Counted from the first letter of the stretch, positions 5,855-44,460 are shown. The stretch is 64,000 nucleotides of DNA from Eutreptiella sp. 'Long Island Sound 2002' (GCA_964036045.1 OZ038378.1:74152001-74216000), one strand, 5' to 3'. The notes: a model not told the origin generated them from the letters alone. Made by a program: numbers and translations.

Positions 5855-5889
5855 TGAGGTGAGGAAGTGCATCTGGGGTCTAGACCGTC
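5855..5889 (+). other. 35-nt boundary motif, copy 2
   Basis: Direct repeat of 4791-4825, lying immediately upstream of the 88-bp array. Confidence 0.75.
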
Positions 5890-5934
5890 CCGCCTCTCAC
5901 CCACACATTTGAGTTGGGACTGCCCCAACACCCA

Positions 5935-6450: not shown

Positions 6451-6471
6451 CTGGACAACATGCCCAGCGCC

Positions 6472-17141: not shown

Positions 17142-17559
17142 CCTGATCTGACCCTTGTGGTGACGGCTGTGAGGCACATTTGACAGCCTCCATGGATTAT
17201 TTAGGGCAACTTTGGAACATTTGAGGGTCTGTGTGAAACATTGGAGGTTCTGTATGGATAGTTATGTGTCTGCATGGAATATCATGGGTCGCCGGGCGAC
17301 ATTCGAGGGTCTCTATGGACTGCTTGGGGTCTTTGTGCAATGTTTGCTTATGTGGAACAATTCAGGGTGTTATGAAACAAATCAGGGGCTCCATGGACAA
17401 CCCCCCCACAAAATCCCAGGACGTGTAACCAGTATCCCCCCGAGGTGATCCAAGTTGGTGTCATGTCCTTGCCTTTGCGCAATGACTCGCACCCCTAGAA
17501 CGTTTGACAGACTATGTGGAATATTTTGGTGGTCCAAAGAACATTTGAGGGTCTAAGTG

Positions 17560-20500
17560 GAATATTTCATACCTCCGTGAATTATTTAACCCCCTCCGTG
17601 GAATATTTGATACCTCCGTGGATTATTTAACCCCCTCCGTGAAATATTTGATACCTCCGTGGAATGTTTAACCCCCTCCGTGGGATATTTGACCGTGAAT
17701 TTTTTAACCCCCTCCGTGAAATATTTCATACCTCCGTCAATTATTTAACCCCCTTCTTGGAAGATTTCATACCTCCGTTGATTATTTAACCCCCTCTGTG
17801 GAATATTTGATACCTCCGTGGAATGTTTCACCCCCTCCGTGGAATATTTCATACCTCCGTGAATTATTCAACCCCCTCCGTGGCATATTTGATAGCTCCA
17901 TGAATTATTTAGCCCCCTTCGTGGAAGATTTCATACCTCCGTGGATTATTCAACCTCCTCCGTGGCATCTTTGATACCTCCGTGAATTATTTAACCCCCT
18001 CCGTGAAATATTTGATACCTCCGTGGATTATTTAACCCCCTCCGTGGAATATTTGATACCTCCGTGGATAATTTAATCCCCTCCGTGGAATATTTCATTC
18101 CTCTATGAATTGTTTACCCCCTCCCTGAAATATTTGATACCGCCGTGGAATGTTTAACCCCCTCCGTGAAATATTTGATACCTCCGTGAATTTTTTAACC
18201 TCCTCCGTGGAATATGTCATACCTTCGTGGATTATTTAACCCCCTCCGTGAAATATTCAATACCCCCGTGAAATATTTAACCCCCTCCGTGGAATATTTC
18301 ATTGCTCCGTGATTTATTTAACCCCCTCCGTGAAATATTTGATACCTCCCTGTATTATTAAACCCCCTCTGTGGATTATTAAGCCCCCTCCGTGGAATGC
18401 TTGATACCTCTGCGGAATATTTAACTCCCTCCGACGAATATTTAATACCTCTGTGGAATATTTAACCCCCTCCGTGAAATAATTGATACCTCCGTGGAAT
18501 GTTTAACCCCCTCCGTGGAATATTTGATACCTCCGTGGACAATTTAATCCCCTCCGTGGAATATTTGATACCTCTGTGAATTTTTTAACCCCCTCAGTGG
18601 AATATTTGATACCCCGTGAATTATTTAACCCCCTTAGTGCAATATTTGATACCTCCGTGAAGTATTCAACTCCCTCCGTGGAAGATTTGATACCTCCGTG
18701 AAATAATTTAACCCCCTCCGTGTAATATTTGATACCTCCGTGAATTATTTAACCCCCTCCGTGAAATAGTTGATACCTCCGTGGAACATGTAACCCCCTT
18801 CGTGGAATGTTTGATACTTTGGTAAATCCATTTAACGCCCTCCGTGGAATATTTTACACCTCGGTGAATTATTTAACTTGCTCCGTGGAATATTTGATAC
18901 CTCCGTGAATTATTTAACCCCCTTCTTGGAAGATTTTATACCCCCGTGGATTATTTAATCCGCTATGTGGAATATTTGACGGCTCCGTGGATTATTTAAC
19001 CCCCTCCGTGGCATCTTTGATACCTCTGTGAATTATTTAACCCTCTCCGTGAAATATTTGACGGCTCCGTGGAATATTTAACCCCCCCCCGTGGAATATT
19101 TGACCCCTCCATGGAATATTGAACCCCCTCCGTGGAATATTTGATACCTCCGTGAATTATTTAACCCCTTCCGTGGAATGTTTGATACCTCCGTGAATTT
19201 TTCCCCCCCTCCGTGAAATATTTGATACCTCCGTTGATTGTTGGACCCCCTCCGTGGAATATTTGATACCTCCGTTGTTTATTTACCCCCTCCGAGGAAT
19301 ATTTGATAGCTCCGTGAATTATTTAACTCCCTCCGTGAAATATTTGATACCTCCGCGGAATGTTTAACCCCCTCCGTGGGATATTTGACCGTGAATTATT
19401 TAACCCCCTCCGTGAAATATTTCATACCTCCGTGAATTATTTAACCCCCTTCTTGGAAGATTTCATGCCTCCGTTGATTTTTTAACCCCCTCTGTGGAAT
19501 ATTTGATACCTCCGTGGAATGTTTCACCCCCTCCGTGGAATACTTCATACCTCCGTGAATTATTCAACCCCCTCCGTGGCATATTTGATAGCTCCGTGAA
19601 TTATTTAGGCCCCTTCGTGGAAGATTTTGTACCTCCGTGGATTATTCAACCCCCTCTGTGGAATATTTCATACCTCCGTGAATTATTCACCCCCCTCCGT
19701 GAAATATTTGATTCGTCCATGAATTGTTTAACCCCCTCCGTGGAATATTTGATACCTCCGTGGAATGTTTAACGCCCTCCGTGAAATATTTGATACCTCC
19801 GTGGATTATTCAACCCCCTCCGTGGAATATTTGATACCTCCGTGGATAATTTAATCCCCTCCGTGGAATATTTCATTCCTCTGTGAATTGTTTACCCCCT
19901 CCCTGAAATATTTGATACCGCCGTGGATTATTTAACCCCCTCCTTGAAATATTTGATACCTCCGTGAATTTTTTAACCCCCTCCGTGGAATATGTCATAC
20001 CTTCGTGGATTATTTAACCCCCTCCGTGAAATATTCAATACCCCCGTGAATTATTTAACCCCCTCCGTGGAATATTTCATTCCTCCGTGATTTATTTAAC
20101 CCCCTCCGTGAAATATTTGATACCTCCCTGTATTTTTTAACCCCCTCAGTGGAATATTTGATACCCCCGTGAATTATTTAACCCCCTTAGTGGAATATTT
20201 GATACCTCCGTGAATTATTCAACTTCCTCCGTGGAAGATTTGATACCTCCGTGAAATAATTTAACCCCCTCCGTGGAATATTTGATACCTCCGTGAATTA
20301 TTTAACCCCCTCCGTGAAATAGTTGATACCTCCGTGGAATATGTAACCCCCTCCGTGGAATGTTTGATACCTTGGTAAATCCATTTCACGCCCTCCGTGG
20401 AATATTTCACACCTCGGTGAATTATTTAACCTGCTCCGTGGAATATTTGATACCTCCGTGAATTATTTAACCCCCTTCCTGGAAGATTTTATACCTCCGT

Positions 20501-23500
20501 GGATTATTTAACCCGCTATGTGGAATATTTGACGGCTCCGCTCATTATTTAACCCCCTCCGTGGCATCTTTGATACCTCCGTGAATTATTTAACCCTCTC
20601 CGTGAAATATTTGACGGCTCCGTGGAATATTTAACCCCCCCCCCCCGTGGAATATTTGACCCCTCCATGGAATATTGAACCCCCTCCGTGGAATATTTGA
20701 TACCTCCGTGGGATATTTAACCCCCTCCGTGGAATATTTGATACCTCCGTGAATTATTTAACCCCCTCCGTGGAATGTTTGATACCTCCGTGAATTCTTC
20801 CCCCCCTCCGTGAAATATTTGATACCTCCGTTGATTGTTGGACCCCCTCCGTGGAATATTTGATACCTCCGTTGTTTATTTAGCCCTCTGAGGAACATTT
20901 GATAGCTCCGTGAATTATTTAACTCCCTCCGTGAAATATTTGATACCTCCGTGGAATATTCAACCCCCTCCGTGGAATATTTGACCCCTCCGTGGAATAT
21001 TGAAACCCCTCCGTGGAATATTTGATACCTCCGTGGAATAATTAACCTTCTCTATGGAATATTTGATACCTCCGTGAATTATTTAACCCCCTCTGTGGAA
21101 TATTCGATACCTCCATGGAATGTTTAACCCCCTCCAAGGCATATTGGATACCTCCGTGAGTTATTTCACCCCCTCCGTGAAAATATTTGATACCGTTGTG
21201 AATGATTTAACCCCATCCGTGGAATATTGGATACCTCCGTGAATTCTTTCCCCCCATCCGTGACATTTTTGATACCTTTGTGGATTATTTAACCCCCTCC
21301 GTGGAATATTTGATACCTACGTGGAATGTTTAACCCCCTCCCTGGAATATTTGATACCTCTGTGAATTATTGAACCCCCTCCATGGAATATTTCATACCT
21401 CCCTGAATTATTCAACCCCCTCCGTGGAATATTTGATACCTCCGTGAAACATTTCACCCCCTCCGTGGAATATTTGATACCCCCCTGGAATATTCAACTC
21501 CCTCTGTAGAATATTTGATCCCTCTCTGGATTTTTTAACCCTCTCCGTAAATTATTTGATACCTCCGTGAATTGTTTAACCCCCTCCGTGGAATATTTCA
21601 TACCTCCGTGGAATATTTGATACCTTTGTGAAACATTTCACCCCCTCCGTGGAATATTTGATACCCCCGTGGAATATTCACCACCCTCTGTAGAATATTT
21701 GATCCCTCTCCGGATTATTTAACCCCCTCCGTGGAGTATTTTATACCTCCATGGATTATTAAACCCCCTCCGTGGAATATTTGATACCTCAGTGGAATGT
21801 TTAACCCCCTGCGTGGAATATTTGATACATCTGTGGAATATTTAACCCCCTACGTGGAATATTTCACCCCTCCGTGAATTTTTTAACCCCCCTTTGTGGA
21901 TTATTTAACCCCCCCATGGAATATTTGATACCTCCGTGGATTATTTCACTCCCTCCATGGAATATTCGATACCTCCACGGATTATTTAACCCCCTCCGTG
22001 GAATGTTTGATACCTCCGTGAATTATCTAACGCCCTCCGTGAAATGTTTCATACCCCTGTGAATTATTTAACCTCCTCCGTGGAATATTGGACACCTCCG
22101 TTGACTATTTCACTCCCTCCATGGAATATTCGATACCTCCACGGATTATTTAACCCCCTCCGTGGAATATTTCATACCTCCATGAATTATTTCACCCCCC
22201 CCGTGGAATATTTGATACCTCCGTGGATTTTTAACCCCCTCCGTGAAATATTTGTTACCTCCGTGGATTATTAAACCCCCTCCGTGGAATGTTGGATACC
22301 TCCGTGGATTATTTAACCCCCTCCGTGGAATACTTGATACCTCCGTGAATTTTTCAACCCCCTCGGTGGAATATTTGATACCTGGGTGGACTATTTAACC
22401 CCCTTTGATACCTCCACGAATTATTTGACCCCTTCCGTGGAACATCCGATACCTCCGTGGCATATTTCACCCCCTCCGTGAAATATTTGATACCTCCGTG
22501 AATCGCCTCCCCCCCTCCGTGGAATATTTGATACCCCCGTGAATTATTTAACCCCCTCCGTGAAATATTTGATACCTCCGTGGATTATTTATCCCCCCCG
22601 TGAAATGTTGGATACCTGCGTGGAATATTTAACCCCCTCCGTGGAATATTTGATACCTTCGTGGACTGTTTAACCTTCTCCGTGGAATACTTGATACCTC
22701 CGTGGATTATTTAACCCCCTCCGTGAAATACTTGATACCTCCGTGGATTATTTATCCCCCCCCCGTGAAATATTTGCTACCTCCCTGGAATTTTCAACCG
22801 CTTCCGTGGAATATTTCATACCCCCGTGAACTATTTAACCCCCTCCATGGAATATTTGATACCTCCGTGAATGATTTCCCCCCCTCCGTGGAATATTTGA
22901 TACCTCGGTGAATTATTCAATGCCCTCCGTGGAATGTTTCATACATCCGTGAATCGTTTTCCCCCCTCCGTGAAATATTTGATACCTTCGTGGATCGTTT
23001 AACCCCCCCGGTGAAACATTTGATACCTCCGTGAACTATTTAACGCCCTCCGTGGGAGATTTTATACCTCCGTGAATTATTTAACCCCCTCCGTGAAACA
23101 TTTGCTACCTCCGTGCAATGTTTAACCCCCTCCGTGGAATATTTGATACCTCCTTGAATCATTTAACCCCCTCCGTGAAATATTTGATACCTCCGTGAAC
23201 AATTTTTACCCCTCCGTGGAATATTTGATACCTCCGTGAATTATTTGACCCCCTCTGTGGAATATTTGATACCTCCGTGGAATGTTTAACCCCCTCCGTG
23301 GAATATTGATACCTCCGTGAATTATTTAACCACCTCCGCGAAATATCTGCCACGTCCGTGAATTATTTAAACACCTCCATGAAATATTTGATACCTCCGT
23401 GGCTTATTTTAACCCCCTCCGTGAAATATTTGATACCTCCGTGGATTGTTTAACCCCCTCGGTGAAACATTTGATACCTCCGTGAACTATTTAACGCCCT

Positions 23501-24806
23501 CCGTGGGAGATTTTATACCTCCGTGAATTATTTAACCCCCTCCGTGAAACATTTGCTACCTCCGTGAAATGTTTAACCCCCTCCGTGGAATATTTGATAC
23601 CTCCTTGAATCATTTAACCCCCTCCGTGAAATATTTGATACCCCCGTGAACAATTTTTACCCCTCCATGGAATATTTGATACCTCCGTGAATTATTTAAC
23701 CCCCTCCGTGGAATATTTGATACCTCCGTGGAATGGTTAACCCCCTCCGTGGAATATTTGATACCTCCGTGAATTATTTAACCCCCTCCGCGAAATATCT
23801 GACACGTCCGTGAATTATTTAAACCCCTCCATGAAATATTTGATACCTCCGTTGCTTATTTTAACCCCCTCCGTGAAATATTTGATACCTCCGTGGATTA
23901 TTTAAACCCCTCCGTGAAATATTTCATACCTTTGTGGACTATTTATCCCCCTCCGCGAAATATTTGATACCTCCGTGAAGTGTTTAACCCCCTGCGTGAA
24001 ATATTTGATACCTCCGTGAATTATTTAACCCCATTAATGAAATATTTGATACCGCCGTGAATTATTTAACCCCCTCCCTGGAATATTTGATACCTCCGTG
24101 GAATGTTTAACCCCCTCTGTGGAATATTTGATGCCTCCGTGGATTATTTAACCCCCTCCGTGAAATATCTAACACGTCCGTGAATTATTTAACCCCCTCC
24201 ATGAAATATTTGATACCTCCGTGGCTTATTTTAACCCCCTCCGTGAAATATTTGATACCTCCGTGGATTATTTAACGCCCTCCGTGAAATATTTCATACT
24301 CTTGTGGACTATTTATCCCCCTGCGTGAAATATTTGATACCTCCGTGGAGTGTTTCACCCCCTCCGTGAAATATTTGATACCTCCGTGAATTATTTAACC
24401 CCATCAGAGAAATTTTTGATACCGCCGTGAATTTCTTAACCCCCTCCTTGAAATATTTGATACCTCCGTGGAATGTTTAAACCCCTCCGTGGGATAATTG
24501 ATACCTCCGTGAATTATTCAACCCCCTCCGTAGAGTATTTCGTGCGTCCGTGAATCATTTAACCCCCTCCGTGAAACATTTGATACCTCCGTGAATTATT
24601 TAACCCCATACGTGGAATATTTCATATCTCCGTGGATTATTGAACCCCTTTTGTGGAATATTTGATACCTCCGTGCATTATTTAATCCCCTCCGTGAAAT
24701 ATTTGATGCATACCTGGAATATTTAACCCCCTTTGTGAAATATTTGATACCTCCTTGGAATGTTTAACCCCCTCCGTGGAATATTTGATACCTCCGTGAA
24801 TTATTG
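17560..24806. repeat. 41-bp satellite array 1 (GGAATATTTGATACCTCCGT + GAATTATTTAACCCCCTCCGT), ~175 monomers; degenerate lead-in 17160-17560
   Basis: Continuous tandem repetition of a dimer of 20- and 21-bp subunits. Confidence 0.98.
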
Positions 24807-26880
24807 ATGGATAGTGGCGTGCAGTGCTTGAGGTTGCCACAATCGCCGCCGCCACCGGTGCCGCCGACCAATGACGGGCCACAAGGTGACCCTTTGCCCA
24901 ATGTGAAGGTTTGCACTCTGCAGTGTCGCACTCGGCAATGTTGCTCAGTGATGTAGGTGTTGCTCTGGCCTTTGTGGCTGTTGAGCACCGCTCGTCTTCC
25001 ATTTTTTGGGTGCCATGTCCAAACTGTCCGATCCGCTTGCAACAGGCCGAGGACGCGAGTAAGAGGGGCCCTACAGTGGAGGCACCTACCGATGTGCCTG
25101 ACGGTGTGCCTGACGGTGTTGCTGCGGTGGAGCCATTGGCAGATGGTGACGGGCACGACTAGAACCCCATCGTTCCGGAAGCCCCCAATGGAGGGGAGGA
25201 GATTGACCAAGGTTGTGGCATGTGAGGTTCGTGCGTTGCCTGCTTCCCATGGTTGTCCTCTCCGTCCTGCATGTTGTGTGTGGTTGTGGCTCGGGACTGG
25301 TTAGCGTGTTCCGGACGTCCCGCGTGTTGTCTCTACCACTGGCTCTAGATCCATGAACTCGTTTTTCCCGTTGTTCCCATCGTCCAGCACCACGTTGGCG
25401 TTTCTTCTCCAGCTCTCATCCATTTTTCATCACTTTTCATTAGTTGCTTAGGCCCGGTGCATGAGGTATAGGCCATGGAGGACGCGAAGAGGATTGTGAT
25501 GACGGAAATGGATTGGACGAGAAGATCATTGACACCAAGCCTTTGCCATCCCAACCCATGGGACCGGTGCGAACCCTGCTGGGAACCCTGCGTAGGCCGG
25601 GTACCCAATTACGAGGACGCGGCCCCACCGCCCGCCTCCCCCCCAAGCACACACCCCCAGTACACAAACAGAAACACCAACAAAAACACAAACACGCTCT
25701 TATGTGTTAGGTGTGTCTTGCGCGTTCCGCACAGGTGGTTTTGGATTTGCTCCAAAACCACCTCTAGCAGAGCCAACGTGCAGGACACCCAGGAACACCA
25801 GGGACGTTTCGTTCCACTTGGCAAGGACACTACCATGTCCTACAAGTGGCTTTGGTAAAAAAGTTGGTTCTCTAGCTAACGGAATTCGTGGTATCACGAG
25901 CATGCGCGACGTAGTGGCGGCAGCAATAGGCAAGTCCGCAGCTGTTGTTGTGCGTAGTTTGTTTCAACTTGTTCTAGATGTTGCCCACATTCAAGCGAAG
26001 ATGGTAACAAAGAGGAGTTTGTACAATGACAGGGCAAACGGGAAGGTAAAGGTTGCAGTGTACAATTCATGCGCACCCGCCGGTTGGAGTCCCTCATTAC
26101 GATGTGCTTTGGGGAGGGGGGACTGAACAACAAGCAAGTGGGACGTAGGCTATGGAGGTAGACTATGGGGTGATGTTTGTAGGGACTGGTGGGACAATTT
26201 GGGCAGGATGTGCGTGTATGCATGGCAAACGGGATGGCAGTCTTGGGGGGAGGTAGGAAGGCCACACGAATATACTATACGGGCAAGGCCCACTTATTCT
26301 TACTGTGTCTCAAGCTTGTGTGATCACATTTTCGGATTGACCACATGTATTTCTTTGCCCACAATTGGAGAATCATGTCCAAACTTTGATGCTTTACCAT
26401 GGAAGGTATCATCGTAGGCTAAGGTGCATGCTCAGCAATGGCGGGGGCCTAAGCGTCCTGCGTGGCCGCCTACGTGTGTAGGTTGTGGTTGACAACCACA
26501 TGATAGGTGACACCCTCCGTCAACAGGGCTGGGATGTCACCAATAGGTCCATGCGTGGACAAGGGGCTGTGGTAGTGCGGCCATTGGCGCGGGGTGCCTG
26601 CAAGAGGGCACTTAGCGACCTCAACTGTGTTCCTATCCTCTTGCAGCGTTTCAAAATCCGTAAGCGGCGGGCCTACGGCATGCGGACATGTGACCATGGC
26701 TTGTGGTGCCTCCGGGTACTTGAGGCGGTGCACGCCACGCATTGGAGGTGCGCGTGTGTGTCAAAATCACTGGCAAAATGGAATGATTTTCGCGCGAATT
26801 CGGTGCATATTTGCTTTCGCAATCGCGCCGCAAACACAGGGAAGGGATGCCGTAGGAATGGGGCATTTGGTGGGGCACCA
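24807..26880 (+). pseudogene. Non-satellite island; possible decayed LINE 5' part with APE remnant
   Basis: VGSLANGIRG (~25862), VAVYNSCAP (~26052), WGDV (~26148) and RPTYSYCVSSLCDHIF (~26287-26330) resemble APE motifs in the correct order, but the match is weak. Confidence 0.3.
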
Positions 26881-28090
26881 TGAAATATTTGATACCCGCG
26901 TGAATTCTTTAACCTGCTCAGAGGAATATTTGATGCCTCTATGGAATATTTAACCCCCTCCGTGGAATATTTGATACCTGCGTGAATTCTTTAACCCCCT
27001 CCCTGGAATTTTTGATACCTCTGTGGATTATCTAACTCCCTGCATGAAATATTTGATACCTTCGTGGATTATTTAACCCCCTTCGTGAAATATTTGATAC
27101 CTCCGTGAATTATTTAGCCCCCTCCGTGGAATATTTCGTACCTCCCTCAATTACTTAACCCCTACCCCGAAATATTTTATGCCTCCGTGAATTAGTTAAC
27201 CCCCTCTGTGGAATATTTCATACCTCCGTGGAATGTTTAACCCCCTCTGTGGAATATTTGATACCTCCGTGAATTATTTCACCCCCCCCCCCCGGGAAAT
27301 ATTTGATACCTTGGTGGATTATCTAACCACTCGGTGAAATACTTGATACCTCCGTGAATTATTCAACCCCCTCCGTGAAGTATTTGATACCTCCGTGAAT
27401 TACTTAACCCCCTCCGTGGAATATTTGATACCTCCGTGAATTATTTCACCCCCCCCCCTGTGAAATATTTGATACCTTGGTGGATTCCTTAACCCCCTGC
27501 GTGGAATGTTGGATACCTCCGTGGATTATTTAACCACCCCCGTGGAATATTTGATACCTCCGTGGAATATTTAACCCCCTCTGTGAAATCTTTGATACCT
27601 CCGTGAATTATTTAACCCACTCTGTGGAGTATTTCATACCTCCGTGAATTTTTTAATCCTGTCCTCGGAATATTTGATACCTTCGTGAATTATCTAACAC
27701 CGTCCCCGGACGAATTCATGCCTCCGTGGATTATTTAAGCCCCTCTATGGAATATTTGATACCTTCGTGGATTCTTTAACGCCCTCCGGGAAATATTTGA
27801 CACTTGTGTGGAATATTTGACCCCCTCCGTGAAATGTTTGGTACCACCGTGGATTTTGAAACCCCCTCCGTGGAATATTTGATACCTCCCTGGATTATTT
27901 AGCCCCCTCTGTAAAAATTATGATACATCCGTGGATTATTTAACCCCCTCCGTGAAATATTTGACACCTCCGTGTATTATCAGACCCCGTTTGTGAAATA
28001 TTTGATACCTCCGTGGAATGTTTAACCCCCTTCGCGGAATTTGGGATTCCTCCGTGAATTATTTAACCCCCTCCGTGGAATACTTCGTAC
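26881..28090. repeat. 41-bp satellite array 2
   Basis: Same monomer as array 1. Confidence 0.97.
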
Positions 28091-28232
28091 CCCTGTACGC
28101 TGTATTGAAGTTCTGATGGAGGCTGTCGGTAGCAAGGACAGCAGCAATCTGCGCCTTGACCGTAGTTCTTGACTGCTGGTTGCCCCCTTTGCACTGTGCA
28201 GTCTGTTTTTCATTTTTACATGAGCAGACAGG
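28091..28232 (+). repeat. Split direct repeat A1
   Basis: ccctgtacgctgtattgaagttctgatggag...catgagcagacagg is repeated at 33870. Confidence 0.93.
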
Positions 28233-33770: not shown

Positions 33771-34192
33771 GTTGGCAGCTTGGTATGCATGTGGAATGCA
33801 ATGAATGTTCGTCCTGTGCTTGCTTATGTGCTGCATTGGAGTGCCCTGCGACCGAAAGCCGGTTTGAACCCCTGTACGCTGTATTGAAGTTCTGATGGAG
33901 CCTGTCGGTAGCAGGGACAGCCAACCTGCGCCTTGACCGTAGTTCTTGACTGCAGGTTGCTTCCTTTGCACTGTGCAGTCTTTTTTTCATTTTTACATGA
34001 GCAGACAGGCCCGCCCACCCGCCCGGAGATTTTGTCTTTTCCGTGCGCACACTGGCACGGAGTGTCGCACCCAGGCAGTCTGGAATCATAGCCGTTGGCA
34101 GCTTGGTTTGCATGTGGAATGCAATGACTGTTCGTCCTGTGCTTGCTTATGTGCTGCATTTGACTGCCTTGCGACCGACAGCCAGTTTGAAC
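33771..34192 (+). repeat. Right terminal block B1 (33771-33869), A2 (33870-34009), B2 (34094-34192)
   Basis: gttggcagcttgg...tttgaac occurs twice, 99 bp each, flanking A2. Confidence 0.93.
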
Positions 34193-34900
34193 CTCCGTGA
34201 ATTATTTAACCCCCTCGGTGAAATATTTGATACCTCCGTGAATTATTTACCCCCCTCCGTGGAATATTTCATACCTCTGTGGATTATTGAACCTCCTCCG
34301 TGGAATAATTGATACCTCCGTGGATTATTCAACCAACCCCCTCCGTGAAATGATTGATACCTCCGTGGAATATTTGATACCCCCCCGAATTATTTAACCC
34401 CCCCCCCCCGTGAAATACTTGATACCTCCGTGAATTCTTTAATCCTCTCCGTGGAATATTTGATACCTCCATGGAATGTTTCACCCCCTCCGTGGGATAT
34501 TTGATACCTCCATGGATTATTTAACCCCCTCCGTGAAATATTTGATACCTCCGTGAATTATTTAACCCCCTCCCTGGAATTTTTGATACCTTTGTGAATT
34601 ATTTAACCCCCTCTGTGGAATATTTGATACCTCCGTTGAATGTTTAACCCCCTCCGTGGAATATTTGATACCTCCGTGGATTATTTAACCCCTTGTGTGA
34701 AATTTTTGATACCTCCGTGAAATATTTAACCCCCTCCGTGGAATTTTTCATACCTCCGTAAATTTTTTCACCCCCTCCGTGAAATATTTGATGCCTCCAT
34801 GGATTATTTAACCCCCTCGGTGGAATATATGCTACCTCCGTGGAGGATTTAACCCCCTTTATGGACCTTTGTGGATTATTTAACCCCCTCCGTGAAATAA
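34193..34900. repeat. 41-bp satellite array 3 (continuation of array 2 after the YR insertion)
   Basis: It resumes at ctccgtgaatt, exactly in register with the left junction. Confidence 0.95.
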
Positions 34901-34917
34901 TTGCCGCTGCTCCTTGA

Positions 34918-35040
34918 CCAGGGTCGTCATGCATTCCCCAACCCACCTACTGCTGGCCCTTGAGCCGCAGAAGTTTGCCCTTGGTACCTGGCCGCCGCGC
35001 CTCGGTTTGGGTCTTCGTTCACATCCCAGCCCACCCACTG
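34918..35040 (+). repeat. ~1.4 diverged copies of the 88-bp repeat seen at 5935-6450
   Basis: ccagggtcgtcatgcattccccaacccacctactgctggcccttgagccgcagaagtttgcc... is roughly 80% identical by eye to the 88-bp unit. Confidence 0.85.
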
Positions 35041-36085
35041 GCATCAAGTGGGCCTGCGCAAGAACCCAAGGAGGAAGCGTCCTACCACTTCGAGTATCGG
35101 GGTCTAGGACCAGATTGCCCTCCTGAGTTGTGGTTAACAACAAGTGCCCACCGGCCTGCACCTTGTGGGCCACGAAAGAAGCCACAACCTTTAACTGTTG
35201 TGAGGCAGCCTCGTACAGATGGCCCAGCATCTTGAATGGCCCCCAACGGACACTATGGAGGCCGCTCGGATGAACATGGGCTTGCGCCTAGCCTTGGGCC
35301 AGATAGGGTCGAGCGCCCCACCTGAACAAGAGGCCATCTATTATAGGAAGTTAGCATGGCACACAGCACCATGTGCCAGGGCTGTGGTCCATACCCATGG
35401 ACTTGCAGCATTGTGCCGCCTGATGTACAGCCAAGAGGGCAGTCCCAATTGCACACGAGAGGATGGTGGTGCTGTTGTGGAATACCGTACGGTAGCCTCT
35501 AACCTGTGGGAGCGGATAAAACAGTATGAGCAGGAAAGTCGGGAGCCGGGTGGTCCACGAGGGGCCATTTTTGGACGGCCCATGAGCGTTTGCATACGCA
35601 CTTGGATGGAGGCTTGGAATAACATTGTGTATGTCTTGCCACTCGTGCACTCATCGCCATTCTGGAGAGGGGAGACCAGGTACCCCACACCCTCTGTGGA
35701 GAAGATGTATGTGGCTGGGGTACGGAGACAACCCTTGGGCCGAATGTAGTATTTTTGGCCACAGGCAACAGGTGCAGCACAGCCATTCACAAGTGATTTG
35801 GTTGCACCTGCGAGCCGCCGGAACTGAGCGTTGCCGGCCGGTGGCAAGGGTTCGAAAGGACAGGGCACCCCAGGATCCGGGGATGGTCGGCAAAGATCGT
35901 CGTTGCCAGGTGGTGGCACATGTTCGACTAGACAGGGGTCTGCTGGATCTAGGGGTAGTCAACGGAGCTCGCCGTTGCCAGAAAGTTCAAGTTCTACTTG
36001 CAGTCCCGGACCTCAACCGACCGTCCCAACCAAACGAGGTCGTGTGACGGTGTGGTTGACTAGGCAGTAGCACTTTGACCAAGCA

Positions 36086-37267
36086 TTGATGCAAACTTGC
36101 CCCGGAATTGCACAGAATGTCCGCATTGCGATGCAAGGCTTGGGGGAGCAACGGCGGGAGCCCCTGTCAGAAGACGCCCTGGTGGCTGCCCATATTGTGG
36201 GACGCCACTTTGCAGAGTCCATGCGTATCCCCATGCAAGAAAGTAGCCACGTGATACTGAGGTGCACCCCTTTCAGCCTTGACATACCCCGCAACTACTT
36301 GGGATACCTCCATGCTGGTGTCTGTGTGGTGAACAATGCATGGTCAGATGATGCTCGTGAGGAGGCCATGGAACTTTTATTGGAAGCAATGGCTGAAGCT
36401 GGGGTGCAAGGCCCCGACCCCCCAGATCTCATGACACTTGACCAGGATCCCCCGAGAGGTGATCCAAGCGAGTCGGACGTCCCAGCCTGTGCGATGCGAC
36501 TCGGATCCCAAGGTACATCTGGTGGTGTCCCTTGTGACAAAGGTACACCCAATGATGCAGGTGCTGTGCACCAGGACGATCAGATGCAGGAAGGGGACAC
36601 AAAGGAGGCCATAGGCACAGATGGCATCCGTGGCGATGCACAGCACTGCCTACCCCCGCAACCTCCTCCCCCCCTAACTCCTATGACTGCTGACCAGGAT
36701 CCCCGCAGAGATGATCCAAGTGAGTCCGACGTCCCAGCCTGTGCGCTGCGATGTGGACCCCACGGCGCACCCGGTGTTGCATATGGTGTGCATGGTGATG
36801 ATGAAATTGAGGGCCGAGAAATGATGGAGAACACACGTCCTGGTGTTGCACAAGAGTGCCTAACCGCACACTCTCGTTGTGGTGTTGAGGCACTCTCTCA
36901 TCAGGGGTCGCCTGTGCCACTAGCACAACGCCCACCAAAGGTTTTGTTTACTGGGCAAGATAGTGAAATGTCGTCCCCTACTATGCATAGCAGTTTGGGG
37001 ACTGCATGCACCGTCATGGCACTTAGTAAGTCCAGCACAGATGGCTCACACCTAAGCAACAGCCCCCCCTCAAGCAAGAAAGCTATGCCTAGGGATCCCA
37101 AACACATGCCTGCTGCAAAGTGTGTGCGGTTTGGCGAGGACCTAGCTACACCAATTGAGATCGACAATCCTAACCAAAAGCTTGAAAAGGATCCATTGAA
37201 GGCCAAGGCCGGTAGGGATCCACCTACCATCCGTCAACTGAAGTTACGGTTGGCGCCTGATGGGTAG
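36086..37267 (+). CDS. Uninterrupted 393-aa ORF of unknown function, with an internal duplicated DQDPxRxDPSESDVPACA unit
   Basis: Long open frame co-oriented with the downstream domains. The repeat units are at ~36437 and ~36690. Confidence 0.4.
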   Translation: MMQTCPGIAQNVRIAMQGLGEQRREPLSEDALVAAHIVGRHFAESMRIPMQESSHVILRCTPFSLDIPRNYLGYLHAGVCVVNNAWSDDAREEAMELLLEAMAEAGVQGPDPPDLMTLDQDPPRGDPSESDVPACAMRLGSQGTSGGVPCDKGTPNDAGAVHQDDQMQEGDTKEAIGTDGIRGDAQHCLPPQPPPPLTPMTADQDPRRDDPSESDVPACALRCGPHGAPGVAYGVHGDDEIEGREMMENTRPGVAQECLTAHSRCGVEALSHQGSPVPLAQRPPKVLFTGQDSEMSSPTMHSSLGTACTVMALSKSSTDGSHLSNSPPSSKKAMPRDPKHMPAAKCVRFGEDLATPIEIDNPNQKLEKDPLKAKAGRDPPTIRQLKLRLAPDG

Positions 37268-37799
37268 ACCTCTATTGCATGTTTCTTTTTTTGCAGCTGC
37301 CCTAAGCCTCCATGCTCTCCGCAGTCAAACCCCCTTATCTCGTGTGGACCTGCGAGTTTAGGCAACCATAATGTACAGGGAACGGTGTGGCAAAGAGGTG
37401 AAAGAGAGTGCTCTAAGTGTCTGTAGGGCCCTGGAAGAGGATAAATGGGACGAGAGGCCCTAGGGGGGTTTGCTAGACCATTTTCGACATCTGGCCACCC
37501 ACATCGATGGGAAGGTTGTGCTGTTGCGTACAAACACGGCAAAAATAATGGGTTCAAGGTTTGGCCCCGACACTGTTGTGACGCCTGCTGCAGTTTGGAG
37601 TCCGGGTATGGCGGAAGCCAAAGTGTAGCATACAACTGAGGAGATGGAGGAAGCCTGTGAACAAGCATGCGTGATCCTCATTGGTGAGGCCGAACGTGAT
37701 GGGTTCCAGGGTGGAGGACATTTCCGAGGCGCCAGCTATGACCGCTGGTTGCAGGTAGCACCTTTGTGTGTCTTGCATGGCATAATGGGGACATTGGTG

Positions 37800-38360
37800 T
37801 ACAGAAGAGAGACGTTTGGGCAGTTCTCCTTGCGAAGGTTACTGCTGGGTGTCGGTGGGAGCAAAGGGCATACAAGGAAGGGGGATGTGCGCCGGTCACG
37901 GCTTGTGCATGGGACACGGGAGCAGGGCCCCTTTTTGTTGATGGTGAACCACATTGCAAGGGGGTTCGGTGCGAGAGTGGTTCACATGGACTACCATACA
38001 GCTGTGATGCAATGAAATGTCAGATCTCCATCAACGTCGTTTTGATAGTACCCCATGGTCAGCAGTGTTCTGCACGGGGCAGCACGTGGGTGGTGAGATC
38101 TGGGTGGAAGAGGGAGGCGTTGGCAGTGGACCGCGTGGCACACCAGGGAGAAGGCATTGCCCAGATGGCATTACCCGTACGGGCCATAGGTACCGTGTCG
38201 ATAGGCAACCTGTAGTGGTCCGCACTCGGGCATGACATGCTACTTGCCCATGGGAAGGGGACAGGCGATTGGTGGTGCTTTACGGCCGTGGAGAATGGCA
38301 GAGTTTGCCTCCATCGCACCGTGAGTTCTTGCACCAGCATGCCTTCCGCCTACCTGCAGG
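37800..38360 (+). pseudogene. 2OG-Fe(II) dioxygenase (DSBH), TET/JBP-like
   Basis: LLLGVGGSKG...TREQGPFLLMVN...YHTAVMQ*N, then a frameshift, then LHQRRFDSTPWSAVFCTGQHVGGEIWVEE...VVVRTRA*HATCPWEGDRRLVVLY...LPPSHREFLHQHAFRLP. The distal His (38236) and 2OG-binding Arg (~38263) are present. The HxD reads HQR in this copy. Confidence 0.7.
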
Positions 38361-38395
38361 TTAGTGGCGGTCCGCAACGTGGAGCACGGCAACAG

Positions 38396-39260
38396 CCATG
38401 TGGCATGGCGAACCCCCAACGTCACAATCGGTGCTGGCTTGGTACAATATTGCAATGCCTCCTACTGGCCTCTGGCGGATAGGAGGCCTTCCATGAATAG
38501 TGCCCAGATGATGTGGCGCTGTGGGCTACACTTTGGGGTGACATTGTGGCAGGTACGACAGGTGCTGTGTACCATTCACATGCCATTGCGCGTCACTTGG
38601 CCGAGGAGGGGCGGCCAACTGTTAGTGTGTGCCAGTGTAGTGCCCGGTGTCAATATGTTAGAAGGCTCCCAAGTTTGAGTGGAAGCACGAGTCCGAGATG
38701 GCTGAGTGTTGGAAGCACATGGTACCGAAGCTGGTTTGTGCTGGTGTTCGTTCTGTGTCTGACTGCTTGTGTCATGAGCAATGGTGGCAGCACTGCCTAG
38801 TATGTGACAAGAAAGTCTTCCAAGCTGGAGGGGAGTTGGCAATGGCTGCCCAAGTGTTGCATGGTAGTAACCAGGGGCAAAGCGTGCGGATGCGATTAAG
38901 GGAGGGAATGAGGGGCCGTTCGTTGGGCCGCCCTTCAAACGCCCCCCCATGTGGCTGTGGGGAGGATCTCCAAGAGGCCATTGTACTATCGCCACTGGTG
39001 TTCAACAAGTTGGCTCCACTCCATGTCCACAATCAACAGCTTCACAGCTTGACCGTGGATCATGAGTTTGTGGATGTCAACAGGTACCATTGGTCCCTCC
39101 GGGCCATGGTACTACCCAATGCAGCGACCAGGGAGGAAGGGCACTTTGTTGTTCCCATTTTGGTTCGCGATGAGTGGTGGCTGTTTGATGATGCCTCAGT
39201 GACAAGTGGACGGCCCCCTGCCGATTCGCGAAAAGTGACATTCCTATTGTATGAGCGTAC
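38396..39260 (+). pseudogene. Ubiquitin-specific protease (peptidase C19) domain
   Basis: Cys box GMANPQRHNRCWLGTILQCL (Cys 38432). His box WSLRAMV...EGHFVV...WWLFDDASV...FLLYER (His 39142, Asp 39187/39190). The two halves are in different frames. Confidence 0.85.
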
Positions 39261-39899
39261 TCCCACAAAGATGGTGGGTCTTTCACAAGGCGGTTCACAA
39301 AGGGGTGCCTACAATCGTGGTGCACGTGGTGCCCCCTCTCAGTCTGCAGCAACAAATGTCCACAGGCATGTCCAGAGCATGCCGAGTTACACCCCATTCC
39401 CAGCCATGGCGCTGGCAACCGGTGACCCAGAGTCTACCAACCACGTTGGGGAAGCACAACCCTCCCCCTCGCAGTCTATAGCACCAGCTATCGACAGGCA
39501 TGCCCGGAGCCTGCCAAGTAACACCCAGTTGGCCGCCATGGCGCTGCCAACGGGTGACCCTGCATATACCACACATGTGGGGGATGCCCAATCCTCCACC
39601 GAGTTTATCGAAGCTGTGGCAAAGTTTGTACAAAAACAAAGGGTACGGGTGAAACAAGATTTGCAGGTCCGTGTGCAAGCCCACCATGTTCATCTCCGGG
39701 CACGTCTTGAGGAGTGGGATGAAAGGCATGCAGGTCAGGGCATGTCACACCGGTCTGTTGCCGAGTCCATAGAACAGGATAGAGCCCGATCTGCTGCATT
39801 GGCAGCAGCAGGGAGCAATGCTTTTTCTGTGATGATGGGGGCAGCCCCCAAGCAACAGACAGCACGGCCAAAGACATTGCAAGCCTTTGTGGATGGGCA

Positions 39900-42010
39900 T
39901 TGGCAGTTGCAGTTCACTGTTGAAGGGGGTGTAATGTGCATGTGTTGTGCATGGGTTGCTCAAATGGATTGTCGTGTGGTGAAGCGGCCACGGAAGGCGG
40001 CTACACCCTTGGTGAATGGAACATATGGCATAGGCATGTGTATGATGATGGCTGGACCAAAGGGATGGCGTAGAGGTGTCCTGGAGGGTCACCTGGGTGT
40101 GTCACGTGGCACAACCCGCAACCGGAGGAAAATTGGGAATCGTGGACACCACCACTTGGCTGCCGAGGAGAATTTCCGGGTGCATTGTGCGGAACATTTT
40201 CGGGCATTGTGCCATAGTGCATCTGTGTGTGCAATCAATGTGGCACCGAAAAGCACAGTGTTCATTAGGGGTGAGGGCATGGACCTCGGTGTGCCTATGA
40301 GCGACGCGGTGGGAGCCATTTTGTCAGGCTTGGTGGTGATATACATTGGGCTCCGCATGTGCACATCCATCCATGCCATCCAGTGAACGCATTCCTTTGC
40401 ATTGCGCGTTGACCTCTGAACCGGGCCATCATGCCTCTTGTCGATGGATAGTTGAGAAGGCCATGGTTGCAATGCATGGTGCCATGCACGATGGTGTGTC
40501 AGACACTCTGCAAAGGGCATTGATTGCCTTGTTGTTGGATGGATCTGACCGGCAACGGCATCGCATTAATGAGTATGCCATCCTGGTCCTCTTCCCTGGC
40601 ACTGGGCCAGGGGGAATGTGTGAAGTGTTCCTTGGTGTGGTGGATGTGGCTTCATGGGAGGCACATGAGGTGACAGCACAGGTGGAGGCAGTGTTGCTGT
40701 CCTGGATGCCTGACGGTGCCTAGTGGGCTTAGAAGGCTGTGGCTTTTGCTGTGGATGGTGTCTAACCTCGGTGTGCGTGGTGCCACTGCACGACAAGCTG
40801 TTGATGTGTCGGCAATGGAGCACAATGTGTTTGCCATGCTTGTGAAGTCATTGTCCTTGCTAACCCCCCCGGGTGAGCCATGCCATGTGGTTCAGCGCAA
40901 GCTAGGTCTTGCCTTGGAGGCTGCCGGCCACGTGCATGGTGACTATCTGGCAGCTGTGCGTCGCCAACGTGCATTGTACAACGGTGCGCGCCAGTGGGAG
41001 GACCTAGAGAGGTGTCTCCAAAAGCACAGCAGACCCGATACACGTAGCGGGTTGCATTTGATCCCTGCCAGTCACCGTATCCGGTGGTTTGAAGCAGATG
41101 CTCATCGCAACAAGGTGTTCTTGGCCAATGTGCCATGGGTGGTGAGGCATTTGGATTCCAGAACGCACCTCACCACCAAGGAGGAGGATGTCCGGGAGGA
41201 TTGCCATGATGCAGGTTTGCTGTCATGGGCTGTGGTATATGGAGACATACTACATGGCACACGTAGCTTCAACAAGGTTGCACAGTTGCATGCACCAACA
41301 GGTGCCCGCCTGACCAAAGCAACCGAAATGTCACTGGCACGGGTGGAAAAGGTGGCGAGGGAGGAGGGGCCACAGTGGACTCAATTCAAAGAGCAAACTG
41401 TGACGGGTGCATGGCATGACGTTGAATTGGTCCGATTTGATACCGATGGCCGGAGGTGCACAACCAGGCCCCCTTTTCTAGCCAAAGAGGCACGTGCAGT
41501 CACAGACACATTGCTTGCTGGCATCATGGAGGCACATGGGACCATTGACCCCGGGGGTGTTCTTGAGTGTGTTGTGTTGCTTGACCATGGCCGTTGGCTC
41601 GCTCTACCAGGGGCTGATCGGGCCACATTTGGAGTGGATCTGCCGAAGCAGTTCATGGGCACACACCACGCTGAACCAGCAGCTGCGCATTATTGCTGCT
41701 CGTGCATTGGAAGAGTGGGAATCCTTCAAGGAGCATGTCCTTCAAACCTTTGCCAAGACCCCCATGTCCCAGATTTGGGAGGCCTTGACGCCGGAGCGGG
41801 AGCATCTCCAATGGGTGAATGTTTGGCGTGTTTTGTCATTGCTGTGCACATGTTGCCTTGCTGAGGATGCTGTTGAGCGTGCCATTTCGTTGCGTGGGAG
41901 GTTCACCAGCAGTATGCATGATATGGAGCACACACCTGTCCTTAGCATGTGCATGGCTGTGCATTGTAATCTGCCACCTTTGCGACAGTGCGTGAAGGGG
42001 CGGGGTGTCA
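39900..42010 (+). pseudogene. hAT-family (ZNF862-like) DDE transposase
   Basis: TTF-like WQLQF...CMCC (39901-39948), LLLDGSD (D 40538), FLGVVDV, AFAVDG-SNLG (D 40754), RKLGLAL, IRW (41082) and hATC-like AVERAIS (E 41875). Several frameshifts and stops. Confidence 0.8.
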
Positions 42011-42289
42011 AGGTAGCCCGCAAGCTGGTAGCCAATGCACGCTTCGATGTGCGTCCCCGGCATAGGGTTTCACAGCACATGGATCCACATACATCAGCGG
42101 AAGCGGCCATGCTGCAATGCCTAGAGGGGGAGGCTGCAGTGGCAGACGATGGTGACATTTTGCCATTTTTGGGGGGTTTCGAGGTGCCACTGGCTTGCCA
42201 AGGGCAAACACGCAAACGGGCGGACCGACAAGCCCCGTCTGGGGACACTATGGTCGAACCAGATGGTAGTCTAGCTCAGCATGGTGGCA

Positions 42290-42810
42290 ACCATGACTTC
42301 TTCACTTGCCGAACCGGCATTGACTGTGCAGCGTGCAGGTAGTCTCTGCGCATCTGTTGCAACACATGTCTGCTTTGCCACACATGCTTTGTCAAAGATC
42401 CAGGACCGTGTGGTGAGGCAATGGTGCAGGTAGTGGATGATGCAGCCGAGGCTGCTGAAAATAACAGCGAAAAGGAAGCAGTGGCACCACGGAAGTCCGA
42501 CCCAAAGCATGCCTTGGCCCGTGCACAGGGCAACCTGGTATGTGCCGCAAAGGCAGGCACATTGCGTGACTGGACACGCGCTCGCATCTATGATTGCTTG
42601 GGTGCCATGGGTGTGAAGGTGCCATATAACATGAACCGGCAACAAGCCCGAGACATTGCTATGCAGCAGGCATTGCCTTTGCGAGCCCAAATGGACTGTG
42701 ATTGCGTCCCCCCAACGGATCGTGTTACCCGTTCTGCTGCACCCCCCAGCAGCTTACAACCATGTTCCCAGGCGCCGGTGGATGACAAGGATGGACTCAT
42801 TGATGAATGA
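42290..42810 (+). pseudogene. Cys-rich zinc-finger-like plus small helical (SAP/HeH-like) C-terminal region of the transposase locus
   Basis: FTCRTGIDCAACR*SLRICCNTCLLCHTC, then WTRARIYDCLGAMGVKVPYNMNRQQARDIAM. Confidence 0.35.
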
Positions 42811-43260
42811 CACAGTTGGGGTGGCAGTGGTATTGTGCTTTTGCATGCTTGCTGTGCCAACCCCCATGGTACCCATGTTCTCGTTCTCTGCAGGTCCATT
42901 CGTACATTAGCAACCATCACCATGAATTGTATTTTTCATTTTCTGTCCGATGTTGTGCTGTAGGAGCGGAGGGCTAACGTTTTTCCATTTCGCTTGGTTT
43001 TCCCTTTCCCACATTTTCTCCAGCAACCCATTTTCCAAGAGGTTTGGGTGTCTGGGGGGGGGGGGGGGGGGCTTTTGCCACATTTTTCCAAGAATTGCCT
43101 TTTCCACATTTTCAAACCCCATATTTTCCCCAACCCATCATTTTCTTGAACTGAACGGTTGGTTGTTTTGGGGGGGGCGGAAACCCTTGTATCAAACTTT
43201 TCCTAGAGGTCCCTTTGCCACATTTTCCATTCCAACACCCCCTATTTTCCCCAACCCACC

Positions 43261-43442
43261 TTTTTCCTGAAGTGAAGTTCCTGTGTGTCTGTGGGGGGGG
43301 GGGGTGCTGCACTTTTATCACCATTTTCCTGAAGTGAAGTTGTTGTGTGTCTTGGGGGGGGGTACTGCACTGTTATCACCATTTTCCTGAAGTGAAGTTC
43401 CTATGTGTCTGGGGGGGGGGGGGGGGGCTGCACTTTTATCAG
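43261..43442. repeat. ~60-bp tandem repeat x3 with poly-G
   Basis: ttttcctgaagtgaagtt...gtgtct-G(n)-ctgcac at 43262, 43324 and 43382. Confidence 0.9.
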
Positions 43443-43499
43443 ACTAGCACTAATTGGCCCAAGGACGTTGAATCCCAAATGAAGGGGTTTGCAAAGGAG

Positions 43500-44460
43500 A
43501 GCACAGTACAAGACAATCAATTGGGCTATGGCGCAATGTCAGAAGAGCATGATTTTGCTTGATACCGCAAGATGCGTCCATGGCTACCCAAAGCAGTGTA
43601 CTTTCTTGACGTAACACAGCACGTCATCCCATCCTTCTTCATCTTCGTTGTTCGGCCGTGTAGAAGCTTATGAACACGAAAGATGAAATATTCGCGCCGT
43701 GGACATAAACTGGCACACAAAAGTAGAGCGCGCCAAACATGTGCGACAACACAACAACCGGACAATGGCATAACCGTTTCTTTGATGACACAGTGGCTAC
43801 GATTTCGGGTTGTCTTTTGCAGTCAAGGGGTAGTAATACCGGCAGCTCACTTTCCCCGCCACGCAAACATTCCACAAGAGGATCTGTTTTCACTGGCATG
43901 GTTGCTTCTTTTTCACTTTGATCGTCATACCCATTTTACAAGACATGCACGCGGACCTACACATACAAATGTACGCAGGTGATCTAGTAATTGACATGGT
44001 ATGTTCTTGCTGGATGCACAAACATTGCTTGAATTCCTACTGAATGCCTTGCGCACGTGTGGAATACACACGAGGTGGCGTACGACTAGAGTTGCGGACG
44101 TTTGTGGTGTGCCTAGGGCTCAAATTTACCCACAAGATCAAAGATTTGGCACTAATGCATCAATAGGCATGGCGCGTGACAAGGATATTTATGCATCTGC
44201 CACTTCCAGATCCTTCCTTAGGGCATCGACGATCCGAGAGTTGGATTTGACTCGCGCCAGGAAGGTACAGTTGTTAAGGCTATGCATTTTTCTAGTATGG
44301 ATTTTGCCATCACAAGTATGCTACCCCAACAAACAAATCATTCAAAGCATGTGCTCGAGGGTGCAAACGGCTTGAGAGAACGACTCTTGGGAACTCAAGT
44401 TATTGAAATTTGGTCACGCTCTTCCGAGGGTGGTTTTGGCCTCATCCCGCAGAGAAACTG
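43500..44460 (+). pseudogene. Decayed, 5'-truncated non-LTR reverse transcriptase
   Basis: DNQLGY (RT2, ~43512), YFLDV (RT3), IPQEDLFS (RT4), FFTLIVIPIL...MYAGDLVI (YADD with GAT>GGT, 43972-43983), VCLGLKF (RT7, ~44103) and thumb SEGGFGL (~44422). The element probably continues to ~45500-46000. Confidence 0.75.

Follow-up and report, generated by a model that had tools for sequence, protein, structure and literature searches.

Location and layout of the coding stretch

Can a dioxygenase-like domain, a deubiquitinase and a transposase that follow each other on one strand of DNA be parts of a single mobile element? This question is raised by a stretch of 64,000 nucleotides from Eutreptiella sp. 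'Long Island Sound 2002' (GCA_964036045.1 OZ038378.1:74152001-74216000), hereafter called the window, in which translation of the three + frames between positions 34900 and 43500 yielded stop-free pieces with repeated frame switches. A preliminary description of this region had proposed a hAT-like transposon that encodes a TET/JBP-like dioxygenase, a ubiquitin-specific protease (USP) and a DDE transposase as one polyprotein. According to the comparisons reported here, the region quite likely forms the coding body of a high-copy, cut-and-paste hAT-type DNA transposon, of which this copy is dead. The element has two open reading frames (ORFs), ORF-A ending in the dioxygenase fold and ORF-B joining the USP to the transposase.

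The coordinates in the window were derived from frame-by-frame translation and from tblastn with the intact paralogue proteins P0247 and P0220, and ten loci with related sequences (L001 to L010) were retrieved for comparison. Coding homology extends from 35219 to 42807 on the + strand and comprises, in this order, the TET/JBP-like domain, the USP boxes, a Cys cluster and a D-D-E-like core. The features of the body are the following:

35219-38361, +, decayed ORF-A (tblastn with L001 ORF1 and P0247: 69-79% identity, 11 stops, 3 frames), containing an unknown N-terminal domain, a repeat-rich linker, a papain/OTU-like domain and the dioxygenase fold
37267-37730, +, papain/OTU-like Cys-His domain (alignments A1 and A2)
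37830-38361, +, TET/JBP-like double-stranded beta-helix domain (model, structure searches and profile matches)
38405-42807, +, decayed ORF-B (tblastn with intact P0220: 74-87% identity, 5 pieces, 5 stops), containing USP, linker, Cys cluster, D-D-E core and Cys-rich tail
38405-39290, +, USP (C19) domain, with the Cys box at about 38405-38460 and the His box at about 39166-39230
39332-39597, +, 132-bp tandem duplication in the ORF-B linker that separates the USP from the transposase
39930-42010, +, Cys cluster and hAT-like D-D-E core, with D/D/E-like motifs at about 40541, 40759 and 41875
42290-42807, +, Cys-rich tail and C-terminal peptide ending ...VDDMDGLIDE, conserved between subfamilies
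42815-43445, +, right arm with 58-bp repeats (43257-43441)

The order of the features on the + strand and the positions given earlier for the dioxygenase, the USP boxes, the Cys cluster and the D-D-E motifs proved to be correct, as did the view that this copy is inactivated. The pieces aligned by tblastn contain at least 16 in-frame stops and about six frame changes, the frames needed being 2, 3 and 1 for ORF-A and 2, 1, 2, 3 and 1 for ORF-B, and the match to the family ends at 43445, the last ~83 bp including the right terminal inverted repeat (TIR) being absent. The coding stretch is flanked by a 41-bp satellite (34186-34903) and by the 58-bp repeats, and no paralogue of the stretch 34903-43445 was found elsewhere within the window. 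Two further assignments had to be revised: what had been listed as unknown ORFs includes the papain/OTU-like domain at about 37267-37730, which had been overlooked, and the supposed TTF zinc finger is merely a Cys cluster that no model matched.

Copies of the element and selection on its parts

A search with the 574-aa ORF of the window as protein query detected 25 paralogues (identity ~80%), located on contigs of megabase size in one ENA assembly, and searches with ORF-A and with the transposase part returned protein clusters of 231, 215, 144 and 173 members at a threshold of at least 90% identity. Contigs of run X1 stack on the stretch with a summed depth in the tens of thousands, near-identical sequence is present in estuary metagenome runs, and three small runs carrying the same species label gave no alignment to the window. 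Scans for a relic of the dinoflagellate spliced leader and with Rfam gave no match. The family comprises hundreds of members, which fall into two subfamilies. The window segment 34903-43445 aligns end to end with L001, L002, L004 and L005 at 85-89% identity and with L003 from 36788 onward, and L001 and L005 are 95% identical across 9 kb. The second subfamily, represented by L006 and L007, shares about 70% DNA identity with the first and has the same gene order.

The order of the parts is repeated in L001 to L007 and in L010. Since it recurs in these eight loci with different flanks in each, the co-linearity is not due to chance. Moreover, the ratio of the proportions of nonsynonymous and synonymous differences (pN/pS) was calculated for L005 versus L006, a pair in which synonymous sites are near saturation (pS 0.53-0.82; pN 0.12-0.50). 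The resulting values were 0.18-0.23 for the transposase core, 0.38 for the dioxygenase fold, 0.44 for the papain-like domain and 0.37-0.58 for the USP pieces. As judged from ratios below 1 throughout, every part has been maintained along the active lineages.

These data bear directly on the alternative that the arrangement arose by chance nesting of separate elements or represents a host gene cluster copied by segmental duplication. The window copy is indeed fragmented and lies amid a nested long interspersed nuclear element (LINE), a tyrosine-recombinase element and satellites, and several of the other loci are likewise nests of elements. Nevertheless, the same order and the same junctions occur in at least eight loci with unrelated flanks and in two subfamilies that are only ~70% alike, the USP and the transposase share one intact natural ORF, a pair of terminal repeats with target site duplication encloses the body in L003, and pN/pS is below 1 in all parts, making this alternative highly improbable. 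The gathering of paralogues, in which the three domains co-occur, has upheld the earlier proposal that the dioxygenase-like, USP and transposase parts belong together.

Organisation of the reading frames

The single transposon encodes its proteins in a different way from that first envisaged. P0258 is an intact ORF-A of 1048 aa with the N-domain, the linker, the papain-like domain and the dioxygenase fold, and in both subfamilies ORF-A stops a few residues after this fold (...FRLPAG-stop or ...FRLHAGA-stop). The USP ORF lies in a different frame and has its own ATG, with which the Cys box opens (M-A/E-N-P...), and another ATG a few codons upstream, and the distance between the stop of ORF-A and the start of ORF-B amounts to ~44 nt (L005 8520-8600; L006 8780-8850; window 38340-38410). 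P0220 represents an intact ORF-B of 1473 aa that begins with MANPPSHNWCWLG, ends with ...DGLIDE and runs without interruption through the USP, the linker, the Cys cluster, the D-D-E core with a putative long helical insertion, a hAT-like C-terminal block and the Cys-rich tail. On this evidence the fusion of USP and transposase is real and a fusion of dioxygenase and USP appears not to be; the notion of one polyprotein and that of a single ancestral reading frame have to be abandoned, the dioxygenase being encoded by the separate ORF-A. ORF-A and ORF-B possibly form a coupled bicistronic arrangement.

A potential splice donor at the ORF-A stop (CAG/GTTAGT) was considered and appears unsupported, with only ~44 nt to the USP start, the frame change and the ATG present in both subfamilies. 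The upstream in-frame ATG of ORF-B overlaps the end of ORF-A, again in both subfamilies. The 132-bp duplication in the linker of ORF-B encodes a repeated Pro/Thr-rich peptide and was seen in all copies.

Element ends and proposed assignment to the hAT type

Terminal repeats and a target site duplication (TSD) had been proposed to be sought in other copies, and they were detected in L003. This internally deleted copy carries perfect 14-bp TIRs, CAGCTATGGGTATA, one at 6008-6021 and the other at 13760-13773. The 8 bp that adjoin each of them on the outside read GTGAACGG in both cases and form a perfect TSD, so that the pair encloses the coding body. Characteristic of hAT elements are short inverted repeats that start with CAG and a target duplication of 8 bp. 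Because L003 shows a 14-bp TIR and an 8-bp TSD, the element is assigned to the hAT type. The exact right terminus ...CAGACTTCAGACTTCAGACTTTATACCCATAGCTG is common to L001, L002, L003 and L005, with unrelated sequence beyond it; the form ...TTTATACCCATAGCTG is found in the same four loci, L004 has one change, and subfamily 2 carries a variant of the right terminus. In the window, the left end at 2496 begins with the same TIR and is, over 74 bp, 88% identical to the TSD-flanked left end of L003.

Two candidates for a right end in the window were rejected: positions 11720-11731 are located inside the coding sequence of a LINE and lack subterminal repeats, and positions 43585-43596 match weakly and have a flank that differs from the 8 bp to the left of 2496. 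The right-arm 58-bp repeats of all copies recur in inverted orientation in the left arm (L003 6213-6356), and CAGACTT motifs adjoin both ends in the same orientation. Both kinds of repeats are candidate binding sites of the transposase.

The catalytic core was assigned by its motifs and by feature similarity. Intact copies contain the motifs LLLDGSDRQ, AVDGASNLG, CHVVQRKLGLALE and AVERAISLRGRF with the spacing D-72-D-376-E, and the layout DGS / DGASN.G / CH....L.L / ER.(I/F)S, read by eye, matches that of Hermes and Ac. In ESM features the core scores 0.89-0.94 against clusters with DUF4371, FAM200-ZBED5 RNase-like or Dimer_Tnp_hAT domains, and all named neighbours at 0.88-0.92 carry one of these. 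The secondary structure of an AlphaFold2 model of the transposase (residues 1-800, 27 close relatives) and the D-72-D-376-E spacing are compatible with an RNase H-like fold that has an all-alpha insertion between the second Asp and the Glu, a compatibility that carries no weight at the mean pLDDT (predicted local distance difference test) of 33. A transposase core of the hAT type is supported by the ends, by the ESM-feature neighbours and by the motif layout.

Several results weigh against this assignment. No match to the hAT profiles of Pfam was obtained with the ORF pieces of the window or, at E values up to 10, with P0043, P0046, P0049, P0016 and P0220, and a profile search of the PDB with the transposase alignment A5 returned no hAT or Hermes match. 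The search with the ORF-A alignment A2 likewise returned nothing relevant. To these results are added the low pLDDT of the model and the fact that only in L003 were two ends and a TSD found together; upstream walks in L007/L009 and L003/L008 revealed no further left end and hence no second TSD-bounded copy. It has accordingly to be considered whether the transposase belongs to another superfamily with 8-bp TSDs (e.g. P, Zisupton, Merlin or Novosib) or to a new one, its likeness to hAT being superficial. The failure of the profiles for DUF4371, Dimer_Tnp_hAT and Hermes, the unusable model and a TIR whose start CAGCT fits just four of the five positions of YARNG speak for such a view, and the named ESM-feature neighbours, the hAT layout of the motifs with their spacing and a putative helical stretch between D2 and E, and the 8-bp TSD of L003 speak against it. 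On balance another superfamily is quite unlikely, and the earlier hAT assignment is retained on its ends, neighbours and motifs, without the backing of hidden Markov models (HMMs) or of a usable structure.

The dioxygenase-fold domain

The fold of the last domain of ORF-A was approached by structure prediction and by profile searches. An AlphaFold2 model built on an alignment of homologues reached a pLDDT above 90 over the dioxygenase domain. With this model, a Foldseek search of the PDB listed CcTet first (1.7e-4), followed by ALKBH6, AlkB and CMD1; VIA-align gave Z scores of 8.9 for NgTET1, 8.1 for AlkB and 7.8 for CcTet; and a structure search of the Swiss-Prot part of AFDB placed JBP2 first (4.8e-5) and JBP1 next. 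The ESM Atlas pointed to clusters with Tet_JBP, 2OG-FeII_Oxy_3 or 2OG-FeII_Oxy_2 (ALKBH2). The predicted fold is that of a nucleic-acid 2-oxoglutarate (2OG) dioxygenase and most resembles TET/JBP, whose lead over AlkB is small.

The family motif reads PHQH..(D/N) ... WHxTCxWxG(D/E)RR, the window copy having LHQRRFD at the first part. An exhaustive profile search collected 133 proteins, the distant ones of which match the dioxygenase domain only and show the consensus WTS..N.....HxDxxN...GGELWVE...WHxTxPWxGxR. Among the distant homologues, Tet_JBP was weakly matched in three of 53 (best E 0.0013) and 2OG-FeII_Oxy_3 in one of 53. Several of them are copia-type polyproteins with RVT_2 and rve domains, indicating that the domain is cargo of several transposon classes. 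The HxD form of the domain is also located inside long proteins (P0139, P0147, P0157, P0158 and others).

A comparison of the iron-binding residues revealed a consistent deviation of the element's family. The Asp of the iron motif is replaced by His (HxH) in 37 of the 38 family members, whereas 25 of the 26 distant homologues have HxD. The distal His (WHxT) is retained, with WHxTxxWxGxR present in 32 family members, and the 2-oxoglutarate-binding Arg is conserved, as W-x-G-(D/E)-R-R is aligned to the G-x-R found in homologues with HxD. In a prolyl 4-hydroxylase, a three-His site created by a D-to-H change abolished activity (PMC2767507). Dioxygenase activity of the domain is doubtful in view of this inactive three-His site and of the near-universal HxH of the family (37 of 38), and the missing match of Pfam Tet_JBP (PF12851) to the element's own proteins adds a second point against the reading as a TET/JBP enzyme.

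The domain might accordingly be catalytically dead or repurposed, for instance as a reader of DNA or modified bases or as a scaffold, in which case the rewriting of base marks would be wrong. Besides the HxH motif, the inactivated hydroxylase and the failure of Tet_JBP, this alternative is favoured by the nearest outgroup fragments, which have HxH as well. It is opposed by purifying selection with a pN/pS of 0.38 and by the retention of both the proximal and the distal His (the latter in WHxT) as well as of the Arg in GxRR. Three-His iron sites are catalytic in other oxygenases of the cupin fold, which also counts against a dead module. A dead or repurposed domain is a serious alternative that falls somewhat short of an even chance. 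What stands of the TET/JBP-like dioxygenase of the preliminary description is the fold, nearest to CcTet, NgTET1 and JBP2, and what does not are the canonical HxD motif and a profile match.

The USP domain and a possible second protease domain

The USP is defined by a Cys box, GMANPQRHNRCWLGTILQCLL, and a His box, GHFVVPILVRDEWWLFDDASV. The Pfam model UCH scored 27.1 bits on the L001 ORF and 25.6 bits on P0220, above its cut-off of 23.9, with only the His-box third of the model covered, and 13.2 bits on the window copy itself. A search of the PDB with the USP family profile retrieved only USP12, USP5 and USP46, matched at the His box with a marginal E value of 0.04. The motifs N-x5-CWLGxxLQCL and GHFxxHxxxxxxWWLCDDxxV, as read from the sequence, are kept in both subfamilies (alignment A7), the Cys box being outside the HMM match. 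The USP assignment of the earlier analysis is borne out by the conserved boxes and by the UCH scores of L001 and P0220.

The domain upstream of the dioxygenase contains, in intact copies, the papain/OTU-like motifs YVAGACF(F/Y)YA, GGxP(D/E)HF..LA..DGxVVLLR and GGH(Y/F)RGA. In the AlphaFold2 model that also covers the dioxygenase domain, the Cys is positioned at the N-terminus of a helix and the His on a strand, with moderate pLDDT here, and the order of helix and sheet together with the motifs resembling a Cys loop and a His loop is compatible with a papain-like fold. The domain is regarded as papain-like and possibly of the OTU type. With an alignment of 24 diverse members (A8), no OTU match was found in Pfam or in the PDB profile search, and the similarity in ESM features to an OTU-containing cluster is just 0.74, which is a lead only. 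That the OTU-like assignment draws solely on the motifs and this weak lead counts against including a second ubiquitin-directed protease in the reading of the element. One fragment of the family in alignment A8 also weakly matches AAA_11.

Satellite, arrays and helicase

The ends of the element had previously been set at 34918 and 43445. Neither can be upheld: the satellite and the 88-bp array upstream of the body belong to the element, and the right end is missing. The features to the left of the body are the following:

2496-2563, +, left end of the family with the 14-bp TIR CAGCTATGGGTATA at 2496-2509 and subterminal sequence (exact 12-mer and 14-mer match)
2564-5945, +, left-arm sequence (blastn; also beside helicase units and left arms in L005, L007 and L010)
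5946-6452, +, first 88-bp tandem array (blastn to the arrays preceding ORF-A in L001, L002, L004 and L005)
6881-9222, +, decayed superfamily 1 (SF1; Upf1/DNA2-like) helicase gene (tblastn with the L006 helicase, 38-64% identity)
17557-24805, +, 41-bp satellite, main block
26878-28097, +, 41-bp satellite, second block
34186-34903, +, 41-bp satellite, last block, abutting the body
34903-35040, +, second 88-bp array, a remnant of 1.5 units

The 41-bp satellite lies immediately upstream of the body in L001, L002, L004, L005 and L009 and is linked to the 88-bp array and the body via a conserved junction of ~100 bp. In subfamily 2 this position is occupied by a related satellite with a 52-bp unit (L006 3282-5187), and P0048 is a deletion derivative in which the satellite is joined directly to the transposase core. 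The 41-bp satellite and the 88-bp array are, by this conserved arrangement, predicted internal components of the element, and their distribution suggests that the transposon spreads and seeds the satellite.

The helicase of L006 matches Pfam AAA_11 at 3.8e-16 and AAA_12 at 1.9e-11, and the order of helicase, satellite and body is repeated in L006 and in L007/L009. The SF1 helicase is probably part of the same giant element. In L010, left arm, 88-bp array and body are present and both helicase and satellite are missing, a structure that would result from recombination between the two 88-bp arrays. The window from 2496 to ~43.5 kb may thus represent one giant element of ~41 kb including nested insertions, of which the LINE would occupy ~9.7-17.5 kb and the tyrosine-recombinase element 28.1-34.2 kb. 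Two observations argue against such an extended element: no TSD pair enclosing the whole of it was found, and in L002 and L009 the satellite starts without a terminal repeat beside unrelated DNA.

Relation to known systems and possible function

TET/JBP genes have been described in fungal DNA transposons including KDZ, hAT7, Harbinger, EnSpm, Helitron and others, with hosts among Pucciniomycetes, Agaricomycetes and Pezizomycetes and with a hAT lineage in Puccinia that has 7-bp TSDs (Kojima 2025, PMC12730594). The family described here resembles these transposons in being a cut-and-paste element with a TET/JBP-fold gene beside the transposase, presumed to provide an escape from methylation-based silencing. 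It differs in its non-fungal host with a large repeat-rich genome, its 8-bp instead of 7-bp TSD, its HxH motif and the fusions of the dioxygenase fold to a papain-like domain and of the transposase to a USP; protease or ubiquitin-related cargo is not mentioned in that study (PMC12730594).

Ulp1 is carried by Mutator-like elements. VTD and OTU deubiquitinase domains are found in Helitrons and Helentrons, where they have been proposed to shield the proteins of transposition against degradation that depends on ubiquitin (Erven et al. 2022, PMC9741609). As in these elements, the transposition protein of the present family includes a Cys-protease of the ubiquitin system; unlike there, this protease is a C19 USP located N-terminal to a D-D-E transposase and not to RepHel, and it is accompanied by a papain-like domain and a dioxygenase fold. 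Limited literature searches retrieved neither a DNA transposon described as carrying a USP nor a description of this combination of cargos. The novelty claimed originally is thereby narrowed, since hAT elements with TET/JBP genes are published for Puccinia (PMC12730594), and kept for the combination with a USP: the USP-transposase fusion together with a TET/JBP-like dioxygenase bearing HxH is, within the literature covered, previously undescribed, each kind of cargo being known elsewhere.

The likeness to the hAT branch around DUF4371, ZMYM1 and FAM200-ZBED5 (Hermes, Ac) comprises the 8-bp TSD, the short CAG-initial TIR, the motifs and a putative long helical insertion. In contrast to that branch, the transposase is too divergent for the Pfam HMMs, is part of a 1473-aa protein that begins with a USP and ends in a Cys-rich tail, and belongs to an element whose internal satellite extends over kilobases and which in some copies also has a gene for an SF1 helicase. 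Kinetoplastid JBP2 is the best structural match in Swiss-Prot and shares the association of a helicase with the dioxygenase. JBP2 is, however, a host gene for a thymine dioxygenase with canonical HxD and an SF2 (SWI2/SNF2) helicase in the same polypeptide, whereas the helicase here is of SF1, is encoded by a separate gene kilobases upstream and is only a probable component of the element. Most unusual in this family are a USP naturally fused to its transposase, a metal site fixed as three His residues, and the satellite inside the element, possibly accompanied by a helicase.

With respect to function, the transposase part of ORF-B would perform the excision and insertion of the element. The USP joined to it, possibly aided by the second protease, would deubiquitinate either the transposase or the chromatin at the element, and the TET/JBP-like domain would act on the bases of the element's DNA. 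Combined, these activities could counter host silencing or degradation. The chemistry at the HxH motif is possibly unlike the ordinary hydroxylation of 5-methylcytosine or thymine, or the domain may only bind. A more far-reaching proposal, that a hAT-lineage transposon of more than 20 kb carries the satellite, the SF1 helicase, two ubiquitin-system proteases of which one is fused to the transposase, and a three-His TET/JBP-fold enzyme with a novel base chemistry as a joint kit against silencing and degradation, is considered unlikely.

Enzyme cargo that acts on host silencing marks is a young topic, with TET/JBP documented in fungi and deubiquitinases in Helitrons, and the family would unite the two in a single element from another host lineage. 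The fusion of a USP to the transposase makes the idea of a 'self-deubiquitinating transposase' directly testable, and a three-His site kept under purifying selection would represent either a new catalytic variant of the 2OG-oxygenase fold or a reader module. The family is also a major shaper of the genome, in which its young copies number hundreds, and its internal satellite suggests one route by which satellite DNA may be spread by a transposon.

Additional sequence features

In L007, the right end of a subfamily-2 element (1-20460) abuts the interior of a subfamily-1 ORF-A (from 20461 on) at a position equivalent to L001 7681. The matching left junction was not found within 27 kb upstream, which implies that the inserted unit is very long or that the site has been rearranged.

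The C-terminal peptide of ORF-B, ...DRVTRSAAPPSSSQP..SQ.PVDDMDGLIDE, is near-identical across subfamilies that are otherwise 30% different (window 42700-42807; P0043, P0046 and P0220). It may serve as a docking motif for a host factor.

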